NCBI GenBank assembly: GCA_965202585.1
Contig: OZ241833.1
Span: forward strand, 5,952,001 to 6,016,000
DNA: 64,000 nt
Direction of reading: 5' to 3'
From: Thalia democratica
Lineage: Eukaryota
Shown here: positions 2,707-62,994 of the stretch, piece by piece
Layout: each line of letters begins with the position of its first letter
How positions within the stretch are numbered: the stretch's first letter is position 1
Notes under the pieces: model-generated
What the model was told of the DNA's origin: nothing
Seen by the model: only the letters and a program-made list of their open reading frames with translations
The model's database searches: none
Made by a program: the position numbers and the translations under genes

Positions 2707-3534
2707 ATGAAACGTTTCGTAATTTTTTGCTTGCTCTTCCTCCAAGCTTGCACGGGGCAGATGTTGGGAGGAAAACAAGCCAAGGAAGGACAGTTCCCGT
2801 TCGTGGTTCAGATCCGCAATCTGAATTGCCACGGAGTTTGCATTTGTGGAGGCGCAATCGTCGCCCCCCATTGGGTTCTGACGGCGGCGCACTGCGTTCG
2901 AAACAGCAACAACCAAACCACAAAAGTGGCCGTCGTGGCGGGAGACGTTTGGCGGTATCGAAGAGAGGGAGTCACGGGCAGGGTGGAGATCGGGCCGGAG
3001 AAGATACAAGTGTACCCCTACCCCGACTTCGAGCGAGACAGGCTGAACGACGTGGCGCTGCTATTTGTCGAGGAACCGTTCAATTCGAAACCGGAAAATT
3101 CGAAAGTCAAGATGATTGGGTTCGGGTCGGACGATGGTGTCGGGGTGGGCCAGGAGTGCACTGTGATGGGATGGGGATTCACCAGGATCGACTGGAAGAC
3201 CGACCAGAGAAGCAGGCAGTCGCCGGTGCTGAAGTACGGCACGCTGAACATCACGACGATCTACCAGCGCATCATTCATTTCGGAGACCTGAACAGGGAC
3301 GGCCCCTACTTGCTGAACGGGGACTCGGGCGGCCCGCTGGTGTGCAGGGACGCCGAAGACGGGAAGCAGAGGCTGTTCGGGTGGCAGCGAGCGACTGATG
3401 TGGAGAAGAACTCGATTTTTTACGTGAGGTACCGCAGTTTCAAAGGTTGGATCAGAAGGAAGCAAGGCGAGGTGGAAAGAGAAAATGAGGACAAGTTTCA
3501 GAAAGACAAAAGCTACGAAGAATATTCAGTTTAG
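2707..3534 (+). CDS. Secreted S1 (chymotrypsin-fold) serine protease copy 1, 275 aa, intact triad
   Basis: ATG at 2707 (ORF-track start is a TTG). Signal peptide MKRFVIFCLLFLQACTG, then QMLGG, WVLTAAHC (His57), NDVALL (Asp102), GWG and GDSGGPLVC (Ser195). Intronless. AATAAA at ~3581. Confidence 0.9.
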   Translation: MKRFVIFCLLFLQACTGQMLGGKQAKEGQFPFVVQIRNLNCHGVCICGGAIVAPHWVLTAAHCVRNSNNQTTKVAVVAGDVWRYRREGVTGRVEIGPEKIQVYPYPDFERDRLNDVALLFVEEPFNSKPENSKVKMIGFGSDDGVGVGQECTVMGWGFTRIDWKTDQRSRQSPVLKYGTLNITTIYQRIIHFGDLNRDGPYLLNGDSGGPLVCRDAEDGKQRLFGWQRATDVEKNSIFYVRYRSFKGWIRRKQGEVERENEDKFQKDKSYEEYSV

Positions 3535-7345: not shown

Positions 7346-8741
7346 AACGTTGAAATAATAAAATAATAAACGACATCAATTTTTTACATGTCATTTTTTA
7401 TGAAAATCATTATGATAGGTAAGATTATCAAAGTTAGTTCAGCAAAGTATTCACAGAACTGTATTTTATAATACTTAAAAAATGTGTTATAAGTTTATTT
7501 TCACCTTTAAAGTTTTTGTACTGCATAAATACACTTTTCCATTTTAATACCTTTACAATAACTTTCAATTAAGGCTCAGTCGCTCATAATGGTAAGTGTG
7601 ACTAAAGTTTAAAACTTTTTAACCACAAGTTTTCTTCAATTTCTTCTAAAGTCTAACTATATATGGTATGTTTGATAAGGGTTTCCCTAACTGGGCAACA
7701 TCGCCCTTTTAATTTCGCCCTTTAAATTAATCAAAAAAATACAGGAAAAGAAAAAATAATAAAAAATAGATTGTAAAAAACGGGTGGATTTTGATAGTAT
7801 ATTCTTCTGTCTCAAGCAATTTATTTGAGAAGTTAACAATTTGAGTTCAAAAAGAATAAAATAAACAAGAAAAGGCAAGTTTTAATATTTATTATCAACT
7901 GTCCTGGACAAGACGTTTAACTGTGTCAAAATGAAGTACGACTCCATAAGCACTTTTCGTACACTGGTCATTATAACATTTAAGCGCTTTATTTGTCCAA
8001 TTTAAGTTATTTATTATCATATTACTATTAAAGTTTTTACTTTCATGAAATTTTAATTAATACGTCAAAAAACTTTTATAAGTACATAGACTTCATTGAG
8101 TTTAATTTTGCTTGTCTTCAACACAATAAATCGCATTTCAGGTTTCAGTGAGAAAGAATTAGAATAACAATAACTAGTATATAGTAACTAGTTTTATAAA
8201 AAATATCATTTATTTAAAAAAACATTTTAGTATTTCTCAGGATTTGTATAATTCAGATTACAGTCAGTTACAACACTGTAAATATTTTTAAACATTTTTA
8301 CAATTTATTTAACTATTCTACCTTTGTACGGGTCTATTTGAAGTATTTAATTATTATACCTTTACAGCTGCAATTTTCTGTTAAGCGTATTAATACCGCT
8401 GTTAGGTTTTAGCTATTATTTAACATCTTTAAGTTATACAAGTATATATTAATTCATTATACAAAGATACAAATTTATTACAGTCTCAACCAATTAGTTT
8501 CAACAACGTAACAAAGTATAACCAAACAAAAAATTATACGGGTTTTGTACACACCTAACAGCAATAAATTTCTTAAATTTATTTTTTTGAATGAACTCAG
8601 TATTTAAAAATTATATAGTAACTTCAACATATCTCACAAACACAACAAACTAAATACAAGAGCAAACAGAGTTGTATTCAAATTAATGGTTTAAGAATAA
8701 TTACGCAGCAAGTCAAAGCGCTTTATTGCTTTGTCAGCTCT

Positions 8742-10379
8742 TCACAGTTTGCTCACCAACGTTTTTCCATCCTCACGACCTTTACATATCTTTTCAGCAG
8801 TTGTTTCAGCCGCCTTGAGGTCTCCAATTTTGCCGTAGAAAATTATGTTCCCTGTGCTGTTGTGTGTTATCAGCACAACAAACTGGTGATTGCAAATGAA
8901 TTCTGCTGGACGGTCACCGAAAGGTCCACTGAATGATGATGCTAGAAATATGCAAAAAGATTAAAACACTCAAGCCATACTGATGTCAAGGTTGAGATCA
9001 ACATACAGTGTTATAAAATATATTGTATTACATAATGAGAGAATAATGTGCAGACAAGAAGTCTTATGGTTATTTTTAAACAAAAATTATAAAATTATTC
9101 ATTTAGAATTGGTAAACAAGATAACCCAAACTTACAAGCTGAAGTAGTTCTCGCTTTGTTAAGTTAATATAATGTAATTTTTTTATAAGTTCAATTTCAT
9201 AGAATTATTACTTAATTATGCATTTTGAATAGACAACTTTTACATTAGGTATCAAGTTTATATTTATACTTGTAGCTAATTTTCATTGAACTTACTATTA
9301 GTCTTTAATAGTGTTTTAAATCATTTCTTATAAAAATAGTTTCATTTTAATACCAGTAAAAATTTAGTTACTCAAATTTGTAGTTTAAATCTAAGTATCT
9401 TACTTGCTACGCCGCATGCTTCAGTGCCTTCTTCGTTGACTTCTAAATAAGTTTTATGAACAATATCCGACACATGAAGTCCTGTTACATCTGAAATTTT
9501 GCTCAAATTTGCTTTTTTGAGTGAAAACATGTCAGTCATCCCCAACTTTTCAAAAGTTTCTCGCAAGTTTTTTTCGTATTCAAGTTTGAACTTTGGCAGG
9601 AGCAGTTTTATATTTCCTTGAAACTCTGTGCTCCGCTCAATCATACTTCTCATCTTGCTAACTGTGAGTTTCTGCAAATCATCGTAACTCTTGGTCGGCA
9701 TGAACAGCCACATTGAGTACTCCTCTCCTGCGTACGGAATTTCTATACCGTACATTTCATCGTCATAAGCATATTTGTAACGAGGCAAGATTTTCGACAT
9801 CATCGCAATTTGAGTTTGTGTGCCGTCACAATTGTGAAAAGTGGACAGAAACGTGGTTTTCATGTTGAAGCCTAATGACCAAAGACCTTTGAAGTGTACA
9901 ACGCTGGTTAAGACCATTCTGGTCTGCTCAGTAAGCGACTCGGGAGCGATCGCCCTTTTTATTCTGTTTCCGGTGCTCTCAGCAACATGTTTGTTAATGG
10001 CATCTGCGCTTCGCTTGCGGTCCGATTTAGTTTTGAATGGCAAGTTTAGCGCCTTGCAACCGAAGCCTTTGAGAAGTTTCAAATAACCACTTTTGACTTT
10101 GTACCGGCTTTCAAGGAATAAATTGTTGAAAATTCGGGCCTTAACTGATGGAGTTTTGGAAGATAACTTTTGAAATTCCTCCAAAACCTCTGTACTTTTA
10201 TAATTACCAATATAGAGACCAAAGGCTTTCGTTATTTGATCTTCGGTGTTGCCTTCTGATCCGCAATAAATCATGCTGAGGGCCAGGGAGATGCTGAAAG
10301 GAGAAAAGAGAATGTTCTCGTGCGGTGATTTGCTGCTAAACTCAGCGTAGAGATCATCAATAAACGAATCAAACGACAT
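8742..10379 (-). CDS. Serpin copy 2, join(10379..9404, 8941..8742), 391 aa, no signal peptide, ends -SKL
   Basis: 976-nt exon, phase-1 donor A|GTAAGA, 462-nt intron, acceptor TTTCTAG|CA. Exon 2 gives T-SSFSGPFGDRPAEFICNHQF...IIFYGKIGDL...VSKL*. AATAAA at 8722-8727. In-frame TGA two codons upstream of the ATG. Confidence 0.88.
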
Positions 10380-10870
10380 TATTCAGATTACTTGTACACT
10401 ACTATCTAAAAATGAAAAAAAATAAAGTTGAAAGAAATTAAAATTGTTATTTTTCTATAGTTTTGGCTGAACTTTGATTGTTAATTTAATGTTAAACTAC
10501 TTTTTTGTCAAATTCTTATAACATAATACATCAATATTGAAAAAAAGAAGATTTTGGGTAATGAGTATTTTAAAGTTAAATATTACAAGTAAAAAATTAA
10601 TATGCTATATTAAGTCTAATCTTATGCTACAGCTAAGGCTTCTAAGCAATGTTTTAACGCATTGATTTGTTTATATATAAAGTAGTAATCAAGCTTTTCA
10701 TACTGATTATGCTTTAATTATTTTTGTAAGGAACGGAATATGAAACTTTGTTTGTAAAAAACCAGCAACTAGTTTGAGGAAAAACATTTTTTGACGTGGA
10801 AATAATACTTAAACTCCACAGTTTGATTTTTAGATAAAAAATTTGACATACTAAGGATAAATATTCAAGT

Positions 10871-11309: not shown

Positions 11310-12111
11310 ATGAAACGTCTCGTAATTTTTTGCTTGCTCTTCCTCGGAGCTTGCTTAGGGCAGATGTTGGGAGGAAAACAAGCCAAGGAAGGACAGTTCC
11401 CGTTCGTGGTTCAGATCCGTAATCTGAATTGCCACGGAGTTTGCATTTGCGGAGGAGCAATCGTCGCCCCCCATTGGGTTCTGACGGCGGCTCACTGCGT
11501 TCGAAACAGTAACAACCAAACCACAAAAGTGGCCGTCGTGGCGGGAGACGTTTGGCAGTTTCGAAGAGAGGGAGTCACCGGCAGGGTGGAGATCGGGCCG
11601 GAGAAGGTACAAGTGTACCCCTACCCCGACTTCGAGCGAGACAGGCTGAACGACGTGGCTCTGCTGTTCGTCGAGGAACCGTTCAATTCGAAACCGGAAA
11701 ACTCGAAAGTCAAGATGATTGGCTTCGGGTCGGACGAAGGCGTTGGGGTGGGGATTCACCAAGATCAACTGGAAGACCAACCAGAGAAGCAGGCAGTCGC
11801 CGGTGCTCAAGTACGGCACGCTGAACATCACGACGATCTACCAGCGCATCATTCATTTCGGAGACCTGAACAGGGACGGCCCCTACTTGCTGAACGGGGA
11901 CTCGGGCGGTCCGCTGGTGTGCAGGGACGCCGAAGACGGGAAGCAGAGACTGTTCGGGTGGCAGCGAGCAACTGATGTTGAGAAGAACTCGATTTTTTAC
12001 GTGAGGTACCGCAGTTTCAAAGATTGGATCAGAAGAAAGCAAGACGAGGTTGAGAGAAAAAATGAGGACAAGTTTCAGAAAGACAAAAGCTACGAAGAAT
12101 ATTCAGTTTAG
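11310..12111 (+). pseudogene. Serine protease copy 2, frameshifted by a 26-bp deletion
   Basis: 802 nt versus 828 nt. The deletion lies between GGGGTGGG direct repeats at ~11745-11753 and puts Ser195 out of frame (ORFs 11286-11975 and 11719-12111). Confidence 0.9.
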
Positions 12112-13038: not shown

Positions 13039-14386
13039 GAAATTATGCTAATTTTATGCAAATTTTTATACATATTTTTGAACGATTTTATGTCGACTAA
13101 AACTGGACATCTGGAAGAGTTAGTGACGTAACATAAAATTTCTGAAATTTAAAAAATAGTTGAAAATATATATTGGATATAATTTTGGGGTGGGTGGGAT
13201 GGAAAACAAAATCGAAAACAGCAGCACGAAAAAGGCTGAAAGCAAGGTCGCACAATCGCGCGCAAAGCGCGCTGTTGTGCTTTCTTTGTGAAGCAAAACC
13301 GAAAGAAAGCGGAGCTTTCTGAGGTTGGGACGTACAAAGAAAGCGAAGCCTTTGAGGCATGAAAGCTAAAGCAAGATCGCACAATCGCGCGCGAAGCGCG
13401 CTGTTGTGCCTTTTTGCGAAGCAAAACCGAAAGAAAGCGGGCTTTCTGAGGTTGGGACGTACAAAGAAAGCGAAGCTTTCGAGGCATGGAAGTTAAAGCA
13501 AGATCGCACAATCGCGCGCGAAGCGCGCTGTTGTGCTTTTTTGCGAAGCAAAACCGAAAGAAAGCGGAGCTTTCTGAGGTTGGGACGTACAAAGAAAGCG
13601 AAGCTTTCGAGGCATGGAAGTTAAAGCAAGATCGCGTGCCTTTTTTGCGAAGCAAAACCGAAACAAAGCGAGCTTTCTGAGGCAGGAATTTAGGTTAGAG
13701 AATTCAGATTTGTTAAAGTTAAAAGACTATTTTTTCTTTCTAGTAGAGTAATTGTCTTTTAATGCTTAGTTAAAACATCAGTTTTTAAAGCAGGAATTTA
13801 AGTTTTTAAGGCAGGAATTTAAGTTAACGAATTTAGATTTGTTTGAAGTTAAAATTAGTTGAGATATTATGTTTTAATACTTAGTTTAAACGGCCGTTTT
13901 TAAAAACTTGAAGTATTTTTTAAGAGAATTTGAAAAATAGTACAAAATTTAAAAACCTTATTATTTTTAACACTTTAATTATAATTTTATTTACTTTCTT
14001 ATTTATTATTAATTATTTATTAGTATTTGCTTTATTTTGCTTGCACAAAAGCGCGCTCTGCGCGCGATGTGCGATACTTTTAGCTACTTATTACAAACTA
14101 TTTTCTTACTTATGTAGTTCTTTTTGATTTGTATTTAAGTGAATAGATATATTAACTTTTTTCTTCGTTTTACATTATCTGTTCGAACTAATTTGTTCTA
14201 ATCCTTAGTTTAAACATAAGTTTTCTAAAATTTTAAGAGTTTTTAATAGTATTTCAAAATTATCATAAATTTGAAAATTTTCTAATTAATATTTTTTTTT
14301 TACTTATATATTATTTATCTGCCTTATTCGGCTAGCACAAAAGCGCGCTTTGCGCGCGGTGTGCGATGCTCTTGGCTATTTATTAA
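13039..14386. mobile_element. 128-bp-repeat element, copy B
   Basis: Same termini as 5158-6334; ~3.4 core repeats; inverted core motifs at ~14040-14080 and ~14330-14370. Confidence 0.5.
13235..13680 (+). repeat. GC-rich tandem repeat, ~128-bp unit x ~3.4
   Basis: The AAGCAAG(A/G)TCGC anchor ends at 13251, 13380, 13507 and 13635 (periods 129, 127, 128). Each full unit contains CGCGCGC(G/A)AAGCGCGC. Confidence 0.9.
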
Positions 14387-15232: not shown

Positions 15233-16425
15233 GATCACAATAGAGTCTAAGGACTAGAGTAAGAACTTTTAGCCATGGATTTTCAAATGATAAGTTTTAT
15301 CTAAAATTTGCTTTGAAAAAGTTTTTTTTGAAGTATATAGTAAGTTTCACAAAATTAAGCAGCTAGCAAAGACTTTTTCAGATAAGTATGGCCTGCCGAC
15401 TAAAAAAGCTTCCAATTCATATTCTAACCTAGAGGCATATAGTTTTTAATATTTAAAAAACTAACTTTGTACTCTTAATAAATTTAGAATTTTATTTAAT
15501 ACAATTCAAATCTGAAAACATCGATCGTTTAGTGAAAAAACTGTTTTTGTGGTATAAAGATAAAGTTTTGATTTTTTAGTTTTAGTTGTAAAATACTAAT
15601 TTTAGTTTTTTCTTGAAAATTGATAACTGAAAAAGCTCAAATTTCTATTTGTTATACAACTTCAAAAATAGTTTAAGAAAAGTGCGTTTCTTATTTAACT
15701 TTAGATAAGTAATTCAAAATCTCTTGGTTTGTAAGGGTAGAAACTAAGCTCTTATATATAAACTAAGTCATTTTTTACCTTAGATAAATTTTCTTTTTCT
15801 TTTGAAAAGACTATGTTAATTAGAACAACAATAATTAGTATATAATAATTTATTTTAGAAAAAAATCTTTTGTTAAAAAAAAATATTTTTAGTAATTCTC
15901 AGGGTTTGTATAATTCAGATTACAGTCAGTTACAACACTGTAAATATTTTAAAAATTTTTACAACTTATTTAACTATTCTACCTTTGTACGGGTCTATTT
16001 GAAGTATTTAATTATTATACCTTTACAGCTGCAATTTTCTGTTAAGCGTATTGTTACCACTGTTAGGTTTTAGCTATTGCTTAACATCTTTAAGTTATAC
16101 AAGTATATATTAATTCATTATACAAAGATACAAAAGTAGTGACACAAATTTATTACAGTCTAAACCAAATATTTTCAACAACGTAACAAAGTATAACCAA
16201 ACAAACAATTATACGGGTTTTGTACACACCTAACAGCGATGAACTTCTTAATTTAATTTTTTTGAACGAACTCAGTATTGAAAAATTATATAATAACTTC
16301 AACATATCTCACAAAAACAACAAACTAAATACAAAAGCAAACAGAGTTGCATTCAAATTAATGGTTCAAGAATAATTACGCAACAAGTCGAAGATCTTTA
16401 TTGCTTTACGAAGCAAGTCAGCTCT

Positions 16426-18065
16426 TCACAATTTACTCACCAACGTTTTTCCATCCTCGCGACCTTTACATATCTTTTCAGCAGTTGTTTCAGCCGCCTT
16501 GAGGTCTCCAATTTTGCCGTAGAAAATGATGTTGCCTGTGCTGTTGTGTGTTATCAGCATAACAAATTGGTGATTGCAGATGAATTCTGCTGGTCGGTCA
16601 CCGAAAGGTCCACTGAATGATGATGCTAGAAATATATGCGAAAAGATTAAAACACTCAAGCCATACTGATGTAAAGGTTGAAATCAACATTCAGTATTAT
16701 AAAATATCTTGTATTATATAATGAGAGAATAATGTGCAGACAAGAAGTCTTATAGTTCTTTTCAAACTAAAATTAAGAAAACTTATAAAATTGTTTATTT
16801 AGAATTGGTAAACAAGATAACCCAAACTTACAAGCTGAAGTAGTTCTCGCTTTATTAAGTAAATATAATGTAATTTTTTTATAAGTTCAATTTAAAAAAA
16901 TTATTACTTACTTTTGCAGTTTGAATAAACAACTTTTACATTAGGTATCAAGTTTGTATTTATATTTGTAGCTATTTTTATTTAACTTACTATCTGTAAT
17001 AGTATTTTAAATCTTATAAGAATAGTTTCATTTTAATACTAGTGCAAATTTAGTTACTCAAATTTGTAGTTTAAATCAAAGCATCTTACTTGCTACTCCG
17101 CATGCTTCAGTGCCTTCTTCATTGACTTCTAAATAAGTTTTATGAACGATATCCGACACATGAAGTCCTGTTACATCTGAAATTTTGTTCATATTTGCTT
17201 TTTTGAGTGAAAACATGTCAGTCATCCCCAACTTTTCAAAAGTTTCTCGCAAGTTTTTTTCGTATTCAAGTTTGAACTTTGGTAGGAGCAGTTTTATATT
17301 TCCTTGAAACTCTGTGCTCCGCTCAATCATGCTTCTCATCTTGCTAACTGTGAGTTTCTGGAGATCTTCGTAACTCTTGGTCGGCATGAACAGCCACATT
17401 GAGTACTCCTCTCCTGCGTACGGCATTTCTATACCGTACATTTCATCGTCATAAGCATATTTGTAACGAGGCAAGATTTTCGACATCATCGCAATTTGAG
17501 TTTGTGTGCCGTCACAATTGTAAAAAGTGGACAGAAACGTGGTTTTCATGTTGAAACCTAATGACCAAAAACCTTTGAAGTGTACAACGCTGGTTAAAAC
17601 CATTCTGGTCAGCTCAGTAAGCGACTCGGGAGCGATTGCTCGTTTTATTCTGTTTCCGGTGCTCTCAGCAACAAGTTTGTTAATGGCATCTGCACTTCGC
17701 TTGCGGTCCGATTTAGTTTTGAATGGTAAGTTTAGCGCCTTGCAACCGAAGCCTTTGAGAAGTTTCAAATAATCACTTTTGACTTTGTACCGGCTTTCAA
17801 GGAACAAATTGTTGAAAATTCGGGCCTTAACTGAGGGAAGTTTAGAAGATAACTTTTGAAACTCTTCCAAAACCTCTGTACTTTTATAATTACCAATATA
17901 GAGACCAAAGGCTTTCGTTATTTGATCTTCGGTGTTGCCTTCTGATCCGCAATAAATCATGCTGAGGGCCAGGGAGATGCTGAAAGGAGAAAAGAGAATG
18001 TTCTCGTGCGGTGATTTGCTGCTAAACTCAGCGTAGAGGTCATCAATGAACGAATCAAACGACAT
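16426..18065 (-). CDS. Serpin copy 3, join(18065..17090, 16625..16426), 391 aa; orphan (no adjacent protease)
   Basis: Same exon structure. The TGA ending the 329-aa ORF is intronic. The upstream region is cut by the junction at 18446-18447. Confidence 0.85.
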
Positions 18066-18875
18066 AATTCAGATTACTTGTACACTACTATCTAAAAATG
18101 GAATAAATTAAAATTGTTATTTTTAATAGTTTTGGCTGAACTTTCATTGTTAATTTAATGTTGATATACTTTTTTTGTCATACACTTTTAAGCTTATACA
18201 TCGGTATTAAAAAAAAAAGATTTTGGGTAATGAGTATTTTTAAGTTTAATGTTACAAGTAAAATTTAATATGCTATATTAAGTCTAATCTTATGTTACAG
18301 CTAAGGTTTCTAAGCAATGTTTTAACGCATTGAGTTGCTTATATATAAAGTAGTAATCAAGCTTTTCATGCTGATTATGCTTTGATTATTTTTGTAAGGA
18401 ACGGAATTTAAAATTTTGTTTATAAAAAACCAGCAACTAGTTTGAGGCATTTTGTTTGTGTAAACTTTTAAAAACACAAAATTTAATACTATTAATAAAA
18501 ACGTTTGACAGTAAAAATATAAGGAAATGATAACAAGCACTTTTGTTTACTTAACTGGAAACAAATTTAGTTTAAGTATAGTGGTTTAATTTGTTTTAAT
18601 CAAAACAAAAAATATCAAGCGAGCAGGTCTGGTTTCCTGACCACTAAGTTACAGTGTAATAAATGCTTGTTGTTGAAAAATGAAAGAGGTATTGTAAGAA
18701 TCTTACTAATTTGTTGATAAAGTTTAACAAAAATATAAATTACTATTATTAGCTACATCAGCTTCTTTAATACTAACTAACAATATAAAAAATACTGTTT
18801 ATACATGCATTTATATAAACTATAAGTTTTAATGAATATAATGACACAACTTAAAACTATCTTTACAGCTTAAAC

Positions 18876-19500
18876 TAGGGGTGGGCAACGTTTTTCAATC
18901 AGCGGGCCGGATCCGGAAATATTTAGTCTTTTGCGGGCCGGAGCACTTTCAATTAGTTATTTACTGGATCCAGTGTCCGGATCCAGTCGAATAATGACTT
19001 TTTAGATCCGAATCCGACTAGATACTAATTTTAAGTCGAGATCCGGATCCGGCCGGAATGTAGTTATATTGAGACAGTGGATCCCTTAATTGAATCCTTA
19101 AAATTCACAAATTTTTCTCAAGTCTGACAACTTAATATATATTGAGACATGTCAGATGTTTAAATAATATTTATAAATATAATTGACATTGTAATTGACA
19201 AAGGTACGTATGTAAAATATCGTACTTAAAAAAAAACTTTGATTGTGGTAATTTGACAAAACGATATTCTAACTAACTTAGAATAACACAAAATATTACG
19301 ACAAAATGGTATATTTATTAGTACACATAAATTTACAAAGTCATTTTTTAGCATATTTTTAAAGTCAAATTCTTACAGTTTTGATTTGTAAAAATATGAT
19401 GCAAATTTCTATAAAAAATTTGTAATATTAACCTTTTGCAGGCCTGTAAGTTTGCTTGCGGGCCGGATCCGGCCCGCGGATCGTACGTTGCCCACCCCTA
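18876..19500. mobile_element. hAT-superfamily MITE, 625 bp
   Basis: Perfect 16-bp TIR TAGGGGTGGGCAACGT / ACGTTGCCCACCCCTA; 8-bp TSD GCTTAAAC/ACTTAAAC (7/8 match); subterminal GCGGGCCGGATCCGG motifs. Confidence 0.85.
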
Positions 19501-19900
19501 ACTTAAACCTCTTTATTGTGTAATTATGGCAATATATTCAACATTTGATTAAAAAACTAAAACAAACTTCTTATGTACTAGTAGCTTAATAGTTAGATAG
19601 CTTAGCAATTAAAAGTTTTATATAAGTATCCTAATACAAAATAAGCAGACAAAAAAATACTAATTTAAATAGACAACATGACTAAATTGGTAGTAGTAAA
19701 TAAAGTTATGAAAAGAACTTGTTGAAAGAACTTGTGGAACTTTTGCAAGTCTAATGATAAAGGTAAAGTTAATAACGTAAATAAACAACATAAGTGTAAC
19801 ATAACGTAAAATGTACATTGAAACACTAACTACCTCATTATAACTCACTAGATTTTTTAATAAATAAAAAAATAACTGTTATTATGATCAAATCACTCAC

Positions 19901-20056
19901 AAGGTTAACTGATCGGTTGTGAAGACCGGTTGAAGCGTACAAGTTGTTCTGGTGCTGCTCTGCCTGCCTCAACAGATCGCAATTCTTCTCCAGATCTTTC
20001 CCGAGGAATCCGTACCTTTCCTCGAAGTTGACGTCAAAGTAGTTGTTGTCGGCCAT
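19901..20056 (-). CDS. Probable first coding exon (52 codons) of an unidentified gene
   Basis: ATAATGG start context; MADNNYFDVNFEERYGFLGKDLEKNCDLLRQAEQHQNNLYASTGLHNRSVNL; GC3-rich codons in AT-rich surroundings; ends at donor CTT|GTGAGT. Confidence 0.5.
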
Positions 20057-21672
20057 TATGTTCTTGTATATCACTTGTGAGGTGTGCTTCTGTTGAACAC
20101 ACATATTTATAAAATTGCTCAGACACACACAGTGTTTACCAGAAAAAATCAGTTAATTATCAACTATTATTGGTAGCATATGGAATAATTACCAAACTAT
20201 ATCGCATTTTCAAGTTTAAATGTAGTTGACTTGATAAAGATTTGTTGTACCAAAAGCGACAACCACTAATAAGCCAGGGGCAACAATGAAACATCATATG
20301 AAAGATGCTATTACGTTATTTTTTCTCGTCTCCCACTTTCAATCTTCACTCTAACGTTACTATAGTAGTTACCGGTAGAACGGTAAGAAAAAGTATTTTA
20401 TCAAATCAATTTTGGCCAACTCTCCCGAATTTAATTATAACGGGTAAACAGCGGGTGCATGACCATTCACTTCAAAAATATATATGTTCTTTATTTCAGA
20501 AAGCATTTATCCGAGCTGTAACATATATATAGTTTTACTTAAAAATAATACTAAGTTTATAATTTTTTGGGAAGTACTTAAGAAATACTATAATTTAGTT
20601 TCGACAATTTTAAAAAATAGACTTTTACCAGTTTAAAATAACTTTTTACAATCTTGTTTTTATAATAAAGTTAAAGCAACAACAAAAGTAATATTATTAT
20701 GTATTTAGAAATATTACTAACTTGTAAAAGCAATTTATTAGGCTAAACAGGTATATATAAAAATTTCAAACACATTAACAATTCATATGATGATTTGATA
20801 AATGATGATTAAAACTAAATTCAAAAATACTTTAGTTCTTCTTTCATAAATTATTGAACTTTACTTTAATTTATTTTTGACTATTTTTAGACGGAACTGT
20901 TACACTCATATGAATGTATGAATAAATTAGTTGTTACATTTAGTTTAGTCTCTTGTAAAAAAATTTTTACCAGTATTTACAGCTATTCAAATTCTTATTT
21001 ATTATTTAAGAGAATAAAAACATAACCTTTGCACATTTTAGTTTACAAGGTTTGATCATACCAATTCGATCATCAGACCACAAGTTGTTGTTTGTACATT
21101 TTACAATTAATAGATTAAAATTTCAACAACATAGTTTAAAAGATAAAGTTTCTATTTTAAATTAGGTAATTAAGCACGTTTAGTTTATAAATTTTTCTAA
21201 TGAGTGCTCATTTTCTTTATAAGCTTGTAAGTATTTATAACTAATAAAGTTTTAATTTCTTTGAGCTTTAGCTTTTTTATTTTGCAAATTAATAATATTT
21301 AAATTTGAATTATTTTGATATATTTAAATTTAAATTTGAATATTTAAATATTACCACTTAGGTAAAATTTGATCTAAAACTTATCTTAAAGTAAATTCAT
21401 TTTCTTTGAAAAGCTATAAAGTAAAAAATAGTTCAAATAACACGTAAAATTCAAACATTTTTATTATAGAATACATTAAGTTTTTATTCATACTGTTGTT
21501 TAATTCAAAAACTAAAATGTAATTGTTAAATATTAAAACTTATTATAATACTCAAAAAAATGAATCACTACTTTAAATAAACTTAATTTTGTTGATAGTT
21601 TTAACATTCGCAGTTAAAGGTTATTTTTACAATTATCTGAGGTAGGACTATTTATTGAGTATCTTTTGTGTA

Positions 21673-23258
21673 TCATAAAGTCATTTTATTATAGTGTTTA
21701 AAATATGTTCCGTAGAAAATGATGTTGCCTGTGCTGTTGTGTGTTATCAGCACAACAAATTGGTGATTGCAGATGAATTCGGCTGGTCGGTCACCGAATG
21801 GTCCACTGAATGATGATGCTAAAAATATGCAAAAAGTTTAAAACACTCAAGCCATACTGGTGTCAAGGTTGAAATCTACATAATGTGTTATAAAATATCT
21901 TGTATTACATAAAAAGAGAATAATGTGCAGACAAGAAGTCTTTTATAGTTCTTTTTAAACAAAAATTAATAAAACTTATAAAGTTATTCATTTAGAATTG
22001 GTAAACAAGATAACCCAAACTTACAAGCTGAAGTAGTTCTCGCGTTGTTAGGTAAATATAATGTAATTTTTTTATAAGTTAAATTTAAAAAATTATTACT
22101 CAGTTTTGCATTTTGAATAGACAAGTTTTACATTAGGCATCAAGTTTATATTTATACTTGTAGCTAATTTTTATTTAACTTACTACCATTAATAGTATAT
22201 TAAATCTTATAAGAATAGTTTCATTTTAATACTAATAAAAATTTAGTTACTCAAATCTGTAGTTTAAATTTAAGCATCTTACTTGCTACGCCGCATGCTT
22301 CAGTGCCTTCTTCATTTACTTCAAGATAAGTTTTATGAACAATATCCGACACATGAAGTCCTGTTACATCTGAAATTTTATTCAAATTTGCTTTTTCGAG
22401 TGAAAACATGTCAGTCATCCCCAACTTTTCAAAAGTTTCTCGCAAGTTTTTTTCGTATTCAAGTTTGAACTTTGGCAGGAGCAGTTTTATATTTCCTTGG
22501 AACTCTGTGCTCCGCTCAATCATGCTTCTCATCTTGCTGACTGTGAGTTTCTGCAAATCATCGTAACTCTTGGTCGGCATGAACAGCCACATTGAGTACT
22601 CCTCTCCTGCGTACGGAATTTCTATACCGTACATTTCATCGTCATAAGCATATTTGTAACGAGGCAAGATTTTCGACATCATCGCAATTTGAGTTTGTGT
22701 GCCGTCACAGTTGTAAAAAGTGGACAGAAACGTGGTTTTCATGTTGAAACTTAATGACCAAAGACCTTTGAAGTGGACAACGCTGGTTAAGACCATTCTG
22801 GTCAGCTCAGTAAGCGACTCGGGACCGATTGCTCTTTTTATTCTGTTTCCGGTGCTCTCAGCAACAAGTTTGTTAATGGCGTCTGCACTTCGCTTGCGGT
22901 CCGATTTAGTTTTGAATGGCAAGTTTAGCGCCTTACAACCAAAGCCTTTGAGAAGTTTCAAATAACCACTTTTGACTTTGTACCGGCTTTCAAGGAACAA
23001 ATTGTTGAAAATTCGGGCCTTAACTGAGGGAGTTTTGGAAGATAACTTTTGAAACTCCTCCAATACCTCCGTACTTTTATAATTACCAATATAGAGACCA
23101 AAGGCTTTCGTTATTTGATCTTCGGTGTTGCCTTCTGATCCGCAATAAATCATGCTGAGGGCCAGGGAGATGCTGAAAGGAGAAAAGAGGATGTTCTCGT
23201 GCGGAGATTTGCTGCTAAACTCAGCGTAGAGGTCATCAATGAACGAATCAAACGACAT
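21673..23258 (-). CDS. Serpin copy 4, join(23258..22283, 21818..21673), 373 aa, chimeric C-terminus
   Basis: Exon 2 is homologous only down to 21710 (..NIIFYG), then reads TYFKHYNKMTL* into unrelated sequence. Splice sites intact. Confidence 0.75.
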
Positions 23259-23749
23259 TATTCAGATTACTTGTACACTACTATCTAAAAATGAAAAAAA
23301 ATAAAGTTGAAAGAAATTAAAATTGTTATTTTTCTATAGTTTTGGCTGAACTTTGATTGTTAATTTAATGTTAAACTACTTTTTTGTCAAATTCTTATAA
23401 CATAATACATCAATATTGAAAAAAAGAAGATTTTGGGTAATGAGTATTTTAAAGTTAAATATTACAAGTAAAAAATTAATATGCTATATTAAGTCTAATC
23501 TTATGCTACAGCTAAGGCTTCTAAGCAATGTTTTAACGCATTGATTTGTTTATATATAAAGTAGTAATCAAGCTTTTCATACTGATTATGCTTTAATTAT
23601 TTTTGTAAGGAACGGAATATGAAACTTTGTTTGTAAAAAACCAGCAACTAGTTTGAGGAAAAACATTTTTTGACGTGGAAATAATACTTAAACTCCACAG
23701 TTTGATTTTTAGATAAAAAATTTGACATACTAAGGATAAATATTCAAGT

Positions 23750-24084
23750 CGAAACGGGTCACTTTTGCACGAAGGGACACTTTTGGACGAGCGTCACTTT
23801 TGCACGAGAGTAAAAAAGTATTTAAAAAAAAAGAAAAAAAAAATAGAAAAACTAATTAATATTGAAAAAATAAAAAGAATTACCGATCGAGGGTAAGGGT
23901 TAGCGGTAATAGTGATAGTAAAAAAAGAATTACAAAAAATAAAAAATAAAACCGGCCGAGGGTAAGGGTTAGGGGTAACAGTGATAAAAAAAGCATACCA
24001 ATAAAACTATTAATTAAAAAAATACAGGAAAACTAAATAAATTATAAAAAATCGATCATAAAAAACCAGAAAAGCTAAATAAGA
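23750..24084. mobile_element. Truncated foldback/MULE-like element
   Basis: Copy of 10871-11205 at +12,879. Confidence 0.55.
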
Positions 24085-24188
24085 GATTTATTAGCCAGTT
24101 TTCTCAAACCTACGTCATAATGCGTTAAAAAATATATTAAAAAAAAAACGAATGTTTCACATCTTTGTTTGTTTTGTGTGTGGCTGAA

Positions 24189-24990
24189 ATGAAACGTCTC
24201 GTAATTTTTTGCTTGCTCTTCCTCGGAGCTTGCTTAGGGCAGATGTTGGGAGGAAAACAAGCCAAGGAAGGACAGTTCCCGTTCGTGGTTCAGATCCGTA
24301 ATCTGAATTGCCACGGAGTTTGCATTTGCGGAGGAGCAATCGTCGCCCCCCACTGGGTTCTGACGGCGGCCCACTGCGTCCGAAACAGCAACAACCAAAC
24401 CACAAAAGTGGCCGTCGTGGCGGGAGACGTTTGGCAGTTTCGAAGAGAGGAAGTCACGGGCAGGGTGGAGATCGGGCCGGAGAAGATACAAGTGTACCCC
24501 TACCCCGACTTCGAGCGAGACAGGCTGAACGACGTGGCTCTGCTGTTCGTCGAGGAACCGTTCAATTCGAAACCGGAAAACTCGAAAGTCAAGATGATTG
24601 GCTTCGGGTCGGACGAAGGCGTTGGGGTGGGGATTCACCAAGATCAACTGGAAGACCAACCAGAGAAGCAGGCAGTCGCCGGTGCTCAAGTACGGCACGC
24701 TGAACATCACGACGATCTACCAGCGCATCATTCATTTCGGAGACCTGAACAGGGACGGCCCCTACTTGCTGAACGGGGACTCGGGCGGTCCGCTGGTGTG
24801 CAGGGACGCCGAAGACGGGAAGCAGAGACTGTTCGGGTGGCAGCGAGCAACTGATGTTGAGAAGAACTCGATTTTTTACGTGAGGTACCGCAGTTTCAAA
24901 GATTAGATCAGAAGGAAGCAAGACGAGGTTGAGAGAAAAAATGAGGACAAGTTTCAGAAAGACAAAAGCTACGAAGAATATTCAGTTTAG
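24189..24990 (+). pseudogene. Serine protease copy 3, 26-bp deletion plus TGG->TAG at 24904-24906
   Basis: Same frameshift as copy 2, with an extra nonsense change in the distal frame. Confidence 0.9.
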
Positions 24991-25917
24991 GAGGGAGTCA
25001 TCGCAATGTTTATTTTGTACCTTCTTTTTGCAATGGAATAATTCTTGTTTTTTTACATTTGAAACTTTTTTATTGTTTCAAAACGAACATAAAGTGTTTA
25101 TTCTAGAACTTATTAAACTTATTTGTAAAGGTTCTATTAAGTTAAGTACATCTTGAATTCTACTGTCTCAATATATTTGACAACTTAACATGAATAAATA
25201 AAATTACTTGTCACCTTTCAAATTAGAAATGAAAACATTTTCTTTAGGCGGGTTAGAAAAAAAAAAACTTATTCATTACCCTTGAAGATTTCTAATACTT
25301 TCAATTCACAAACATTACTCAAACGTCACATTTTAAACTAACGTTGTTTATCGAGCGACAAAAAAAAAGAACTCATAAAGTCTGTCCTAGGATCTGGTGT
25401 ACGAAAAAACCTTTCGGTTATCAAGTCGTACCTTTTAATGTCTTGTGCAGGCCGTATTAAGTGTTCGGACTCCGAACTTCGGAGTTCTTTGTTTTAGATA
25501 GCTTTTAGCCGAGCTATAACATATAGAGTTCAACTTTATAGTTTAATTAAGTTAACAATTTTTTAGAAAGTACTTAACAAAAACTAAAATTAAGTTTTGC
25601 TAACTTTGAAAAATAGACTTTCACCAGATAAAAAAAAACTTTTTACAGACTTTTTATTTAATATAAAGTTAAAGCAGAAACAAAAGTAATATTAACGTAT
25701 ACTTAAAAGCATTTTTAAATTGTAAAAGCAATATGTTATGCTAAACATAAAAATTTGTTAAGCTCAACATAAAAATAAAAATTTTAAACACTTAAACAAC
25801 TGTCAATGCTGATTAATACTAAAATCAAAAACACTTTGATTCTTCTTTCATAAGTTATTGAAATTTACTTTGATTATTTTTATTTTAGACGGAACTGTTA
25901 TACTCGTGTGAATTTGT

Positions 25918-29304: not shown

Positions 29305-30944
29305 TCACAATTTACTCACCAACGTTTTTCCATCCTCGCGACCTTTACATATCTTTTCAGCAGTTGTTTCAGCCGCCTTGAGGTCTCCAATTTTGCCGTA
29401 GAAAATGATGTTGCCTGTGCTGTTGTGTGTTATCAGCATAACAAATTGGTGATTGCAGATGAATTCTGCTGGTCGGTCACCGAAAGGTTCACTGAATGAT
29501 GATGCTAGAAATATATGCGAAAAGATTAAAACACTCAAGCCATACTGATGTAAAGGTTGAAATCAACATTCAGTATTATAAAATATCTTGTATTATATAA
29601 TGAGAGAATAATGTGCAGACAAGAAGTCTTATAGTTCTTTTCAAACTAAAATTAAGAAAACTTATAAAATTGTTTATTTAGAATTGGTAAACAAGATAAC
29701 CCAAACTTACAAGCTGAAGTAGTTCTCGCTTTATTAAGTAAATATAATGTAATTTTTTTATAAGTTCAATTTAAAAAAATTATTACTTACTTTTGCAGTT
29801 TGAATAAACAACTTTTACATTAGGTATCAAGTTTGTATTTATATTTGTAGCTATTTTTATTTAACTTACTATCTGTAATAGTATTTTAAATCTTATAAGA
29901 ATAGTTTCATTTTAATACTAGTGCAAATTTAGTTACTCAAATTTGTAGTTTAAATCAAAGCATCTTACTTGCTACTCCGCATGCTTCAGTGCCTTCTTCA
30001 TTGACTTCTAAATAAGTTTTATGAACGATATCCGACACATGAAGTCCTGTTACATCTGAAATTTTGTTCATATTTGCTTTTTTGAGTGAAAACATGTCAG
30101 TCATCCCCAACTTTTCAAAAGTTTCTCGCAAGTTTTTTTCGTATTCAAGTTTGAACTTTGGTAGGAGCAGTTTTATATTTCCTTGAAACTCTGTGCTCCG
30201 CTCAATCATGCTTCTCATCTTGCTAACTGTGAGTTTCTGGAGATCTTCGTAACTCTTGGTCGGCATGAACAGCCACATTGAGTACTCCTCTCCTGCGTAC
30301 GGCATTTCTATACCGTACATTTCATCGTCATAAGCATATTTGTAACGAGGCAAGATTTTCGACATCATCGCAATTTGAGTTTGTGTGCCGTCACAATTGT
30401 AAAAAGTGGACAGAAACGTGGTTTTCATGTTGAAACCTAATGACCAAAAACCTTTGAAGTGTACAACGCTGGTTAAAACCATTCTGGTCAGCTCAGTAAG
30501 CGACTCGGGAGCGATTGCTCGTTTTATTCTGTTTCCGGTGCTCTCAGCAACAAGTTTGTTAATGGCATCTGCACTTCGCTTGCGGTCCGATTTAGTTTTG
30601 AATGGTAAGTTTAGCGCCTTGCAACCGAAGCCTTTGAGAAGTTTCAAATAATCACTTTTGACTTTGTACCGGCTTTCAAGGAACAAATTGTTGAAAATTC
30701 GGGCCTTAACTGAGGGAAGTTTAGAAGATAACTTTTGAAACTCTTCCAAAACCTCTGTACTTTTATAATTACCAATATAGAGACCAAAGGCTTTCGTTAT
30801 TTGATCTTCGGTGTTGCCTTCTGATCCGCAATAAATCATGCTGAGGGCCAGGGAGATGCTGAAAGGAGAAAAGAGAATGTTCTCGTGCGGTGATTTGCTG
30901 CTAAACTCAGCGTAGAGGTCATCAATGAACGAATCAAACGACAT
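29305..30944 (-). CDS. Serpin copy 5, join(30944..29969, 29504..29305), 391 aa, RCL Gly->Glu variant
   Basis: Same structure as copy 3; GGA->GAA at 29489 gives SSFSEPF. Confidence 0.85.
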
Positions 30945-31732
30945 AATTCAGATTACTTGTACACTACTATCTAAAAATGGAATAAATTAAAATTGTTATT
31001 TTTAATAGTTTTGGCTGAACTTTCATTGTTAATTTAATGTTGATATACTTTTTTTGTCATACACTTTTAAGCTTATACATCGGTATTAAAAAAAAAAGAT
31101 TTTGGGTAATGAGTATTTTTAAGTTTAATGTTACAAGTAAAATTTAATATGCTATATTAAGTCTAATCTTATGTTACAGCTAAGGTTTCTAAGCAATGTT
31201 TTAACGCATTGAGTTGCTTATATATAAAGTAGTAATCAAGCTTTTCATGCTGATTATGCTTTGATTATTTTTGTAAGGAACGGAATTTAAAATTTTGTTT
31301 ATAAAAAACCAGCAACTAGTTTGAGGAAAAATATTTTAAGACGTAGTTTACAACACTACTAATATCTTTACTTGTATTTATCTACTTAATTTCTACATCT
31401 TTAAAATTAACTTTAAAAAAGTATTTCTTACATTTTTGTTATGTAGCTTAGTATAAGGCATAAAAGTAAATTAAGATAAAACAGTAATAAAAGTTAATAT
31501 AACAGTTGGTTAGGAATTAACAAAATTATTTATACATGTAACTGTATGCAGATTAGCTGTTTATTTCTACAGCTTAAAGGTAAATATAATTTAAAAAAAA
31601 GCGAAAGAAAATAATTAGGAAATAACTAGAAATAAATATTTATAAAAATAAAAAAGAAGGTAATAATACTTAAACTCCACAGTTTGATTTTTAGATAAAA
31701 AATTTGACATCTTAACGATAAACAATTCAAGT

Positions 31733-43134: not shown

Positions 43135-44744
43135 TCACAATTTGCTCACCAACGTTTTTCCATCCTCACGACCTTTACATATCTTTTCAGCAGTTGTTTC
43201 AGCCGCCTTGAGGTCTCCAATTTTACCGTAGAAAATGATGTTCCCTGTGCTGTTATGTGTTATCAGCACAACAAATTGGTGATTGCAAATGAATTCTGCT
43301 GGTCGGTCACCGAAAGGTCCACTGAATGATGATGCTAAAATATGCAAAAAGATTAAAACACTCAAGCCATGCTGATGTCAAGGTTGAAATCAACATACAG
43401 TGTTATAAAATATCTTGTATTACATAATGAGAGAATAATGTGCAGACAAGGAGTCTTATAGTTCTATTCATTCAAAATTAATAAAACTTATAAAATTATT
43501 CATTTAGAATTGGTAAACAAGATAACCCAAACTTACAAGCTGAAGTAGTTCTCGCTTTGTTAAGTAAATATGATGTAACTTTTTTATAAGTTCAATTTAA
43601 AAAAATTCAACTTTTACATTAGGTATCAAGTTTATATTTATACTTGTAGCTAATTTTTGTTTAACTTACTACCAGTAATAGTGTTTTAAATCTTGTAAGA
43701 ATAGTTTCATTTTAATACTAGTACAAATTTAGTTACTCAAATCTGTAGTTTAAATCTAAGCATCTTACTTGCTACTCCGCATGCTTCAGTGCCTTCTTCA
43801 TTGACTTCCAAATAAGTTTTATGAACAATATCCGACACATGAAGTCCTGTTACATCTGAAATTTTGCTCAAATTTGCTTTTTTGAGTGAAAACATGTCAG
43901 TCATCCCCAACTTTTCAAAAGTTTCTCGCAAGTTTTTTTCGTATTCAAGTTTGAACTTTGGCAGGAGCAGTTTTATATTTCCTTGAAACTCTGTGCTCCG
44001 CTCAATCATGCTTCTCATCTTGCTAACTGTGAGTTTCTGCAAATCATCGTAACTCTTGGTCGGCATGAACAGCCACATTGAGTACTCCTCTCCTGCGTAC
44101 GGAATTTCTATACCGTACATTTCATCGTCATAAGCATATTTATAACGAGGCAAGATTTTCGACATCATCGCAATTTGAGTTTGTGTGCCGTCAAAATTGT
44201 AAAAAGTGGACAGAAACGTAGTTTTCATGTTGAAACGTAATGACCAAAGACCTTTGAAGTGGACAACGCTGGTTAAGACCATTCTGGTCAGCTCAGTAAG
44301 CGACTCGGGAGCAATCGCTTTTTTTATTTTGTTTCCGGTGCTCTCAGCAACATGTTTGTTAATGGCATCTACGCTTCGCTTGCGGTCCGATTTAGTTTTG
44401 AATGGCAAGTTTAGCGCCTTGCAACCTAAACCTTTGAGAAGTTTCAAATAATCACTTTTGACTTTGTACCGGCTTTCAAGGAATAAATTGTTGAAAATTC
44501 GGGCTTTAACTGAAGGTTTTTTGGAAGATAACTTTTGAAACTCCTCCAAAACCTCTGTACTTTTATAATTACCAATATAGAGACCAAAGGCTTTCGTTAT
44601 TTGATCTTCGGTGTTGCCTTCTGATCCGCAATAAATCATGCTGAGGGCCAGGGAGATGCTGAAAGGAGAAAAGAGAATGTTCTCGTGCGGAGATTTGCTG
44701 CTAAACTCAGCGTAGAGGTCATCAATGAACGAATCAAAAGACAT
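43135..44744 (-). CDS. Serpin copy 6, join(44744..43769, 43334..43135), 391 aa
   Basis: Intact; 434-nt intron; acceptor TTTTAG|CA; ends VSKL*. Confidence 0.88.
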
Positions 44745-51950: not shown

Positions 51951-52106
51951 AAGGTTAACTGATCGGTTGTGAAGACCGGTTGAAGCGTACAAGTTGTTCT
52001 GGTGCTGCTCTGCCTGCCTCAACAGATCGCAATTCTTCTCCAGATCTTTCCCGAGGAATCCGTACCTTTCCTCGAAGTTGACGTCAAAGTAGTTGTTGTC
52101 GGCCAT
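51951..52106 (-). CDS. Duplicate of the unidentified 52-codon exon
   Basis: Same translation as 19901-20056. Confidence 0.5.
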
Positions 52107-61354: not shown

Positions 61355-62994
61355 TCACAATTTACTCACCAACGTTTTTCCATCCTCGCGACCTTTACAT
61401 ATCTTTTCAGCAGTTGTTTCAGCCGCCTTGAGGTCTCCAATTTTGCCGTAGAAAATGATGTTGCCTGTGCTGTTGTGTGTTATCAGCATAACAAATTGGT
61501 GATTGCAGATGAATTCTGCTGGTCGGTCACCGAAAGGTCCACTGAATGATGATGCTAGAAATATATGCGAAAAGATTAAAACACTCAAGCCATACTGATG
61601 TAAAGGTTGAAATCAACATTCAGTATTATAAAATATCTTGTATTATATAATGAGAGAATAATGTGCAGACAAGAAGTCTTATAGTTCTTTTCAAACTAAA
61701 ATTAAGAAAACTTATAAAATTGTTTATTTAGAATTGGTAAACAAGATAACCCAAACTTACAAGCTGAAGTAGTTCTCGCTTTATTAAGTAAATATAATGT
61801 AATTTTTTTATAAGTTCAATTTAAAAAAATTATTACTTACTTTTGCAGTTTGAATAAACAACTTTTACATTAGGTATCAAGTTTGTATTTATATTTGTAG
61901 CTATTTTTATTTAACTTACTATCTGTAATAGTATTTTAAATCTTATAAGAATAGTTTCATTTTAATACTAGTGCAAATTTAGTTACTCAAATTTGTAGTT
62001 TAAATCAAAGCATCTTACTTGCTACTCCGCATGCTTCAGTGCCTTCTTCATTGACTTCTAAATAAGTTTTATGAACGATATCCGACACATGAAGTCCTGT
62101 TACATCTGAAATTTTGTTCATATTTGCTTTTTTGAGTGAAAACATGTCAGTCATCCCCAACTTTTCAAAAGTTTCTCGCAAGTTTTTTTCGTATTCAAGT
62201 TTGAACTTTGGTAGGAGCAGTTTTATATTTCCTTGAAACTCTGTGCTCCGCTCAATCATGCCTCTCATCTTGCTAACTGTGAGTTTCTGGAGATCTTCGT
62301 AACTCTTGGTCGGCATGAACAGCCACATTGAGTACTCCTCTCCTGCGTACGGCATTTCTATACCGTACATTTCATCGTCATAAGCATATTTGTAACGAGG
62401 CAAGATTTTCGACATCATCGCAATTTGAGTTTGTGTGCCGTCACAATTGTAAAAAGTGGACAGAAACGTGGTTTTCATGTTGAAACCTAATGACCAAAAA
62501 CCTTTGAAGTGTACAACGCTGGTTAAAACCATTCTGGTCAGCTCAGTAAGCGACTCGGGAGCGATTGCTCGTTTTATTCTGTTTCCGGTGCTCTCAGCAA
62601 CAAGTTTGTTAATGGCATCTGCACTTCGCTTGCGGTCCGATTTAGTTTTGAATGGTAAGTTTAGCGCCTTGCAACCGAAGCCTTTGAGAAGTTTCAAATA
62701 ACCACTTTTGACTTTGTACCGGCTTTCAAGGAACAAATTGTTGAAAATTCGGGCCTTAACTGAGGGAAGTTTAGAAGATAACTTTTGAAACTCTTCCAAA
62801 ACCTCTGTACTTTTATAATTACCAAAATAGAGACCAAAGGCTTTCGTTATTTGATCTTCGGTGTTGCCTTCTGATCCGCAATAAATCATGCTGAGGGCCA
62901 GGGAGATGCTGAAAGGAGAAAAGAGAATGTTCTCGTGCGGTGATTTGCTGCTAAACTCAGCGTAGAGGTCATCAATGAACGAATCAAACGACAT
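61355..62994 (-). CDS. Serpin copy 8, join(62994..62019, 61554..61355), 391 aa
   Basis: Intact; RCL SSFSGPF; its partner protease is expected at ~64,500, outside the window. Confidence 0.85.

Follow-up and report, generated by a model that had tools for sequence, protein, structure and literature searches.

Several serpins carry short address signals at their C-termini. HSP47/SERPINH1 ends in RDEL, and neuroserpin possesses a C-terminal sorting tail. The serpins of clade B, which are the intracellular, ovalbumin-type serpins, likely guard the producing cell against its own protease. A different class of C-terminal signal directs proteins to peroxisomes. The tripeptide Ser-Lys-Leu (SKL) is the canonical and strongest type 1 peroxisomal targeting signal (PTS1), and the cargo that PEX5 recognises in this way includes the peroxisomal proteases Tysnd1 and LONP2. 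In LDHB and MDH1 a cryptic PTS1 is exposed by readthrough of the stop codon. Among the enzymes of peroxisomes are serine proteases that take part in the processing and degradation of matrix proteins, and to our knowledge no endogenous protein inhibitor of these enzymes has been described. Isoform A of Drosophila Spn42Da (Spn4) ends in HDEL, and moving its stop to just before HDEL changes the location of the protein (PMC3252376). Here we describe a tandem array of eight two-exon serpin genes within a stretch of 64,000 nucleotides from Thalia democratica (contig OZ241833.1, positions 5,952,001 to 6,016,000; the whole of this stretch is referred to as the window). The products predicted for five of the eight genes end in SKL.

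The original prediction for this locus was a possible peroxisomal serpin, and its author knew of no serpin with a PTS1. Our full-text literature search likewise found no PTS1 or peroxisomal serpin (the matches to 'PTS1' concerned pertussis toxin S1), and it returned no report of a serpin or any other protein protease inhibitor among PTS1 cargo. At the sequence level the prediction is supported by the gene model, the apparent lack of a signal peptide, a true extension, the coding character of the tail, the terminal SKL and the preceding T-L-V. It is weakened by the endings of the three related tails found, none of which is a PTS1. We consider it plausible but unproven that the SKL-ending product is a real, peroxisomal PEX5 cargo, and we would put this at somewhat less than an even chance.

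The serpin genes and their predicted product

All serpin features of the window lie on the minus strand. In copy 2, coding exon 1 (9404..10379, 976 nt, defined from the list of open reading frames (ORFs) and the Pfam match) begins with the ATG at 10379 and ends in GCA A before gtaaga. The 462-nt intron that follows (8942..9403, gtaaga...ttctag) is in phase 1 and interrupts the reactive-centre loop. Exon 2 of the serpin genes is entered at ttctag|CA, and its serpin part in copy 2 (8817..8941) supplies the remainder of the loop and strands s4B/s5B, ending in AEFICNHQFVVLITHNSTGNIIFYGKIGDL. The spliced coding sequence of copy 2 is 1176 nt long and encodes 391 amino acids. An intact spliced frame of this length is present in copies 2, 3, 5, 6 and 8, and the donor A|GTAAGA after the hinge is also found in two metagenomic relatives (L001 and L003). 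The predicted two-exon gene model appears sound.

Exon 1 matches the Pfam serpin family (PF00079) with an E value of 9e-79 over profile positions 5-327 of 370. Exon 2 matches positions 339-367 with 22.6 bits, which taken alone is under the 27-bit cut-off, and the profile match extends across the fold as in members of the serpin superfamily. The solved structure that best matches exon 1 is isoform B of Spn4 (4p0f, E 1.6e-42), neuroserpin is second, and SERPINB1 and SERPINB3/B4 are also among the closest. Inhibitory serpins have a hinge with Glu at P17, Gly at P15, Thr or Ser at P14 and small residues from P12 to P9. The hinge encoded by exon 1 of copy 2 reads EEGTEACGVA in the spliced coding sequence and follows this rule, with the caveat that Cys at P11 and Val at P9 are both slightly bulky.

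The protein begins with the acidic sequence MSFDSFIDDLYAEF, and its match to Pfam starts from residue 5, which places the start at the first residues of the serpin domain. An acceptor-like site lies 26 nt 5' of the copy 2 ATG. However, because an in-frame TGA stands between this site and the ATG, no signal peptide or coding exon can be spliced on there. Based on the acidic N-terminus, the start of the Pfam match and the upstream TGA, the serpin is predicted to have neither a signal peptide nor an N-terminal extension. Acceptor-like sites (TTTTTAG, TCTACAG or ATTTCAG) precede the serpin ATG by 26-36 nt, both in the window copies (10380-10420 for copy 2) and in relatives (about 1490-1528 in L005 and about 40-86 in L001), which suggests a 5' untranslated region (UTR) intron or a trans-splice site.

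Copies 3, 5 and 8 are approximately 100% identical, as are copies 4 and 7, including introns and flanks (offsets of 12,879 and 32,050 nt). For this reason the tailed genes represent only three independent lineages, namely copy 2, copy 6 and copies 3/5/8. In the serpin body, about 11% of synonymous sites and 1.2-1.9% of non-synonymous sites have diverged between lineages. The resulting ratio of non-synonymous to synonymous differences per site (pN/pS) of 0.12-0.18 indicates working genes under purifying selection on the protein.

The C-terminal extension

The reverse complement of 8742-8945 encodes ...NIIFYGKIGDL, then KAAETTAEKICKGREDGKTLVSKL, then TGA. This segment had been described as a 25-residue extension ending in SKL at 8816-8742. 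The SKL ending is correct; the length is 24 residues plus the stop, together 75 nt, the stop having been counted as a residue. In copy 2 the extension occupies 8745..8816, with the SKL codons at 8753-8745, and the TGA (8742..8744) is common to all five tailed copies. Five of the eight serpin copies have this same tail, and their stops lie at 8742, 16426, 29305, 43135 and 61355 (tail plus stop at 16426..16500 in copy 3, 29305..29379 in copy 5, 43135..43209 in copy 6 and 61355..61429 in copy 8). As originally reported, SKL is encoded by AGC-AAA-CTG in copy 2, by AGT-AAA-TTG in copies 3, 5 and 8, and by AGC-AAA-TTG in copy 6, in each case followed by TGA. The tail pattern has five matches in the window compared with 0.04 expected, a result of gene duplication and not of independent recurrence. 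Exon 2 aligns with the end of SERPINB3/B4, which have only three more residues past the position matching GKI. The serpin fold thus ends where clade B serpins end, and the 24 residues lie beyond it as a true extension.

The tails of the three lineages differ by three synonymous changes (CGT/CGC, AGC/AGT and CTG/TTG) and by no non-synonymous change. For the pair of copies 2 and 3, approximately 6 replacements would be expected over the 56 non-synonymous tail sites if the tail were neutral, and none is seen. In the 60 columns after the TGA, 8 of 51 ungapped sites vary and there is a 9-nt indel, compared with 3 variable sites out of 72 in the tail (Fisher p = 0.05). This rise in variation right after the TGA indicates that constraint ends at or near the stop. 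Overall, the tail evolves as coding sequence, invariant at the protein level across the three lineages.

The C-terminal tripeptide fits the PTS1 consensus [S/A/C]-[K/R/H]-[L/M], with SKL directly before TGA in the five copies, which presupposes that the tailed exon is terminal. Positions -6 to -4 are T-L-V and include no acidic residue, the nearest (Asp and Glu) being at -9 and -10. This context agrees with a rule derived from plant data, according to which the absence of acidic residues from -6 to -4 is permissive for a PTS1 (PMC9542071). The tail is hydrophilic, with a mean hydropathy of -0.73 and with 6 basic and 4 acidic residues, and probably serves as a flexible linker. A structural model of the 65-residue fragment encoded by exon 2 (mean predicted local distance difference test score (pLDDT) 59.8) shows the two last strands and a helix at residues 41-57, with pLDDT below 50 at residues 54-65. 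From this weak model, made for the fragment only, the tail end may be accessible. Judged by its sequence, the predicted protein seems to possess every feature required of a PTS1 cargo.

We propose the following scheme. The extension starts alike across the subfamily and then appears to vary freely in length and sequence. In this genome TGA terminates it directly after Ser-Lys-Leu, and the position of the stop would decide whether SKL is exposed. The folded serpin would be made in the cytosol, where the TPR domain of PEX5 would recognise the SKL displayed by its flexible tail. A portion of the serpin pool, at the least, would then enter the peroxisomal matrix, with the remainder staying cytosolic. 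Any role within the peroxisome is speculative, but one possibility is that the serpin keeps in check a trypsin-like protease of the matrix, of the Tysnd1/Deg15 type.

Related tails in marine metagenomes

The proteins closest to exon 1 are exon-1 fragments on short Tara Oceans and other ENA contigs, with identities of 98%, 64%, 55%, 52% and 44%. Named serpins, from ticks, locusts, molluscs and fishes, are at most 36% identical. A word-index protein search with exon 2 alone gave no matches. An exhaustive HMMER search with exon 2 against 1.84 billion representatives identified three related exon-2 ORFs (P0121, P0122 and P0124), all on marine metagenome (Tara Oceans) contigs with 25-28% GC. A scan of Joint Genome Institute (JGI) metagenomes with the exon-2 alignment identified 33 loci, which match the serpin core only at 50% identity or less, and none of the 33 has the tail. 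The subfamily appears to be uncharacterised and otherwise found only in ocean metagenomes.

All three related tails share the start of the extension, K/E-x-A/C-E/K-T/S-T-x-E, which makes the extension a subfamily trait. Tail lengths in the subfamily range from 24 to 41 residues, and the tails of P0122 and P0124 do not align at their ends. P0122 has a long acidic tail ending in ...SSDEKF, and P0124 (L012 102-305) ends in ...KRRRVK, similar to a nuclear localisation signal of the basic type. P0121 (L005) reads ...DSLSKL followed by 15 further codons to ...NLNYS-stop, so that its SKL is internal. Among the tails found, a C-terminal SKL is confined to the window lineage.

The occurrence of SKL at the homologous place in L005 is a point in favour of a peroxisomal serpin. 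Its exact placement differs between a MAFFT alignment and an amino-acid alignment, being either in register or two codons off. L005 and the window are approximately 71% identical over exon 1, exon 2 and flanks. The post-stop stretch of copy 2 (8691..8741) is open in the tail frame to ...LLRNYS-stop and homologous to the coding continuation of L005, ...MLRNLNYS-stop. The frame after the TGA is open for 16-19 codons in all three window lineages, and the indel that separates the window copies preserves the frame. The stop may either have been gained in the window lineage directly after a pre-existing SKL or have been lost in the P0121 lineage. As a separate matter, we considered a reassigned TGA, which was ruled out; Trp is encoded by TGG, in-frame TGA is absent from about 600 serpin and protease codons, and the relatives stop with TAA or TAG.

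The P0121 gene (L003-L005) has a 1-nt deletion in exon 1 that is common to contigs of different samples, and because the deletion recurs across samples the gene is a pseudogene. L003 and L004 also contain an extra in-frame stop, and P0005 looks frameshifted (pseudogene relatives: L003 802-1799, L005 1529-2526 and P0005). The serpin family evolves by birth and death, and several of the metagenomic relatives are pseudogenes.

Is the terminal SKL a targeting signal?

Several observations weigh against a peroxisomal location. All three related tails end in something other than a PTS1, so the signal is not conserved in orthologues, and none of the 120 best serpin matches ends in [SAC][KRH][LM]. When proteins were searched by word index with exon 1, the close relatives recovered were all metagenomic exon-1 fragments, and no protein was full-length or derived from a transcript. 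It is true, as originally argued, that SKL has been kept through synonymous changes. However, with three codons and three lineages to compare, the argument has no statistical power; under neutrality about 1 non-synonymous change would be expected in the SKL codons by themselves, and 0 are seen. Additionally, all seven exon-2 copies read F-I-C-N-H-Q-F, with Gln replacing the near-invariant Pro of F-x-x-(D/N)-(H/R)-P-F (CNHQF at 8880-8895 in copy 2 and at the same place in the other six). This Pro is kept in the Tara relatives and in SERPINB3. In human alpha-1-antitrypsin, changes to the same Pro cause deficiency. The joint amplification of the serpin with a secreted protease suggests that it protects the cell from within the cytosol, and import would run counter to this. 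Finally, some marine animals, namely Oikopleura dioica and caligid copepods, have been reported to lack peroxisomes (PMC4690255; bioRxiv 10.1101/2021.03.15.435234).

There is a distinct possibility, though one well short of probable, that the SKL is incidental. The extension would then be a subfamily trait with another role or none, ended by a neutral shift of the stop, and the serpin would be a cytosolic guard against the co-amplified protease, its import being absent or a by-product. The different endings and lengths of the related tails agree with this explanation, as does the frame past the TGA, which is still open and homologous to coding sequence in L005. A protease/guard pair would likewise fit the head-to-head arrangement of the serpin genes with those of a secreted trypsin-like protease, and their joint amplification. 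By our own estimate from typical residue frequencies, a random C-terminus reads SKL approximately 4 times in 10,000, and a few such ends would thus be expected to arise by chance in any proteome. However, import is the usual fate of soluble proteins in the cytosol that expose a canonical SKL. Soluble proteins that have strong PTS1s and are not peroxisomal are scarce (PMC9542071). The invariance of the tail protein in all three lineages also argues against an incidental SKL, and a stop arising exactly after a pre-existing SKL would be an odd coincidence under neutrality.

A peroxisomal location could also be part of a wider pattern, in which this would be the first serpin of the peroxisomal matrix, created by a stop after SKL, and the variable tails may route paralogues to different destinations, with SKL directing to peroxisomes, KRRRVK to the nucleus and the acidic ...DEKF elsewhere. 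We regard this broader proposal as rather unlikely.

The 3' flank and a donor-like site

The donor-like TTG|GTGAG(C/T) that had been noted directly before SKL is present, and judged by its sequence it makes a good donor. In copy 2 it reads TTG|GTGAGC, with the GT at 8755..8756, four codons before the stop, and the L005 equivalent is TTG TCA AAA CTG. Farther downstream there is a conserved 3' block (8611..8672; 3290-3350 in L005) composed of a pyrimidine tract ending in TATTTAG (AG at 8651-8650) and the GU-rich sequence TTTGTTGTGTTTGTGAGATATGTTGAAG. The block shows 3 variable sites out of 60 among the window lineages and is approximately 90% kept in L005. Its possible roles are those of a UTR element or of an acceptor for the GTGAG donor.

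If TTG|GTGAG(C/T) were spliced to the pyrimidine tract and to its AG, which lies downstream at a distance of about 107-116 nt, the PTS1 would be missing from part or all of the protein. In copy 2, splicing from 8756 to 8650 would remove 107 nt and convert VSKL to a 12-residue hydrophobic end, FVVFVRYVEV-T/I-I, followed by a stop. The GTGAGT of copies 3, 5 and 8 is a consensus donor. Moreover, the stretch between donor and AG, which includes the 9-nt indel, is the most variable of the 3' flank while the block after the AG is conserved, and the first part of the block looks like a good acceptor, which L005 retains as well. Nevertheless, we judge this splice improbable. At the homologous place L005 lacks a GT and its frame runs on uninterrupted, its would-be exon meets a stop after 6 codons, and GTGAG is simply the codon pair Val-Ser. 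The GU-rich block also contains ATTTA and by our reading fits a 3' UTR stability element as well. The lack of GTGAG in L005, together with its colinear ORF and 3' flank, argues that the tailed exon is terminal.

A polyA signal had also been said to follow the stop. AATAAA is indeed found 14-23 nt 3' of the stop in copies 2, 3, 5 and 8 (at 8727-8722 in copy 2, within the post-stop stretch), and AATGAA in copy 6. However, the motif is not conserved and lies upstream of the conserved 3' block, and its position is coding sequence in L005. AATAAA or ATTAAA occurs at about +265 and +400 in all three window lineages.

Organisation of the array

The window is AT-rich eukaryotic DNA with a GC content of about 30% and no runs of N, and it does not resemble human sequence. 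The ORF list places the ATGs of the eight serpin genes at 1169, 10379, 18065, 23258, 30944, 44744, 55308 and 62994. In copy 1, exon 1 is frameshifted and exon 2 lies beyond the edge of the window. Exon 2 of copy 4 (21673..21818) loses homology after NIIFYG, and its frame ends without the tail in the 11 unrelated residues TYFKHYNKMTL-stop; the identical exon 2 of copy 7 (53723-53868) also has no tail. The array is best explained as a birth-and-death array of inhibitory-type serpin genes without signal peptides, encoding 391 residues. That the array is decaying or partly an assembly artefact, its tailed copies not expressed and their ending biologically meaningless, is very improbable, since the broken or truncated state of three of the eight serpin copies, the frameshifts in three of the six protease copies, the near identity of copies 3, 5 and 8 and of copies 4 and 7, and the pseudogenes among metagenomic relatives are set against five full 391-codon frames with a pN/pS of 0.12-0.18 between lineages about 11% apart at synonymous sites.

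Comparison of 16000-31000 with 48000-63000 points to one of two origins, an assembly artefact or a segmental duplication that took place very recently. Among relatives the reactive-centre loop is a hypervariable segment, reading SSFSGPFGDRPAEF, ACYGGGEFQTEF, QMTGGGRCDSF and RGGGHCEIVEF (the loops begin exon 2 at 8900-8941 in the window, 3041-3080 in L005, 2832-2870 in L008 and 102-140 in L012). Copy 5 has a G to E change in this loop. Relatively GC-rich tandem repeats of 127 nt (3.1 copies) are found at 13239-13635, 26118-26514 and 58168-58564, in a repeat unit downstream of some of the protease genes. Rfam and tRNA scans of the window gave no matches.

Six of the eight serpin genes are arranged head-to-head with a plus-strand gene for a secreted trypsin-like protease (2707-3534, 11310-12111, 24189-25040, 32452-33279, 45548-46375 and 56239-57040; motifs TAAHC, NDVAL and DSGGP). 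The protease at 45548-46375, divergent from serpin copy 6, matches Pfam PF00089 with an E value of 5e-31. The copies starting at 11310, 24189 and 56239 are frameshifted between the Asp and Ser motifs. The unbroken proteases at 32452 and 45548 read NWDSGGP, compared with NGDSGGP in others, a change of the oxyanion-hole Gly to Trp. Relatives of the protease were found only in marine metagenomes (36-62% identity), and matches to named proteases are at about 30% identity or less. A motif approximately 70-80 nt upstream of the protease ATGs, CTACGTCATAATGC, contains ACGTCA and is kept in the window and in the distant metagenomic relatives L013, L014, L015 and L016; it is probably a promoter element. 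No serpin adjoins the protease relatives on contigs L013-L016, and no protease was found within about 1.5 kb upstream of the serpin relatives L003-L005. The pairing of serpin and protease is therefore not a conserved feature.

Significance and comparison with known systems

If the SKL-ending serpin is imported, the address tags of serpins would extend beyond the endoplasmic reticulum signals HDEL and RDEL, and a protease inhibitor would gain access to peroxisomal proteases such as Tysnd1-type enzymes. The locus would also provide a simple and testable case of a targeting signal gained or lost by a shift of the stop codon. If the SKL is instead incidental, the locus would serve as a caution that an intact gene under selection can carry a textbook SKL that is restricted to a single lineage and absent from the nearest relatives.

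The predicted product resembles clade B serpins such as SERPINB1, SERPINB3/B4 and SERPINB9 in that it has no signal peptide, starts at the start of the domain and has an inhibitory-type hinge. However, clade B serpins end 2-3 residues after strand s5B, whereas the window serpin continues for 24 residues and so does not share their lack of a C-terminal extension. It also differs from them in being no more than 36% identical to any named serpin and in having Gln for the Pro of (D/N)(H/R)PF.

Isoform A of Spn4 is one of the nearest precedents for a short tag at the C-terminus that governs where a serpin is located. However, HDEL acts in the secretory pathway through the KDEL receptor, whereas the SKL of the window serpin would act on a cytosolic protein through PEX5. 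No similarity was seen between the Spn4 tail and the window tail. HSP47 and neuroserpin differ from the window serpin as secretory-pathway proteins with signal peptides, and HSP47 is additionally non-inhibitory.

LDHB and MDH1 are alike in that the position of termination decides whether a PTS1 tripeptide is terminal. In those proteins readthrough reaches the signal within one gene, whereas the window serpins and their relatives show a fixed difference in stop position, and no coding constraint is seen after the TGA. Like established PTS1 cargo, the window serpin is a soluble protein predicted to be made in the cytosol, with a C-terminal SKL and favourable residues at -6 to -4.

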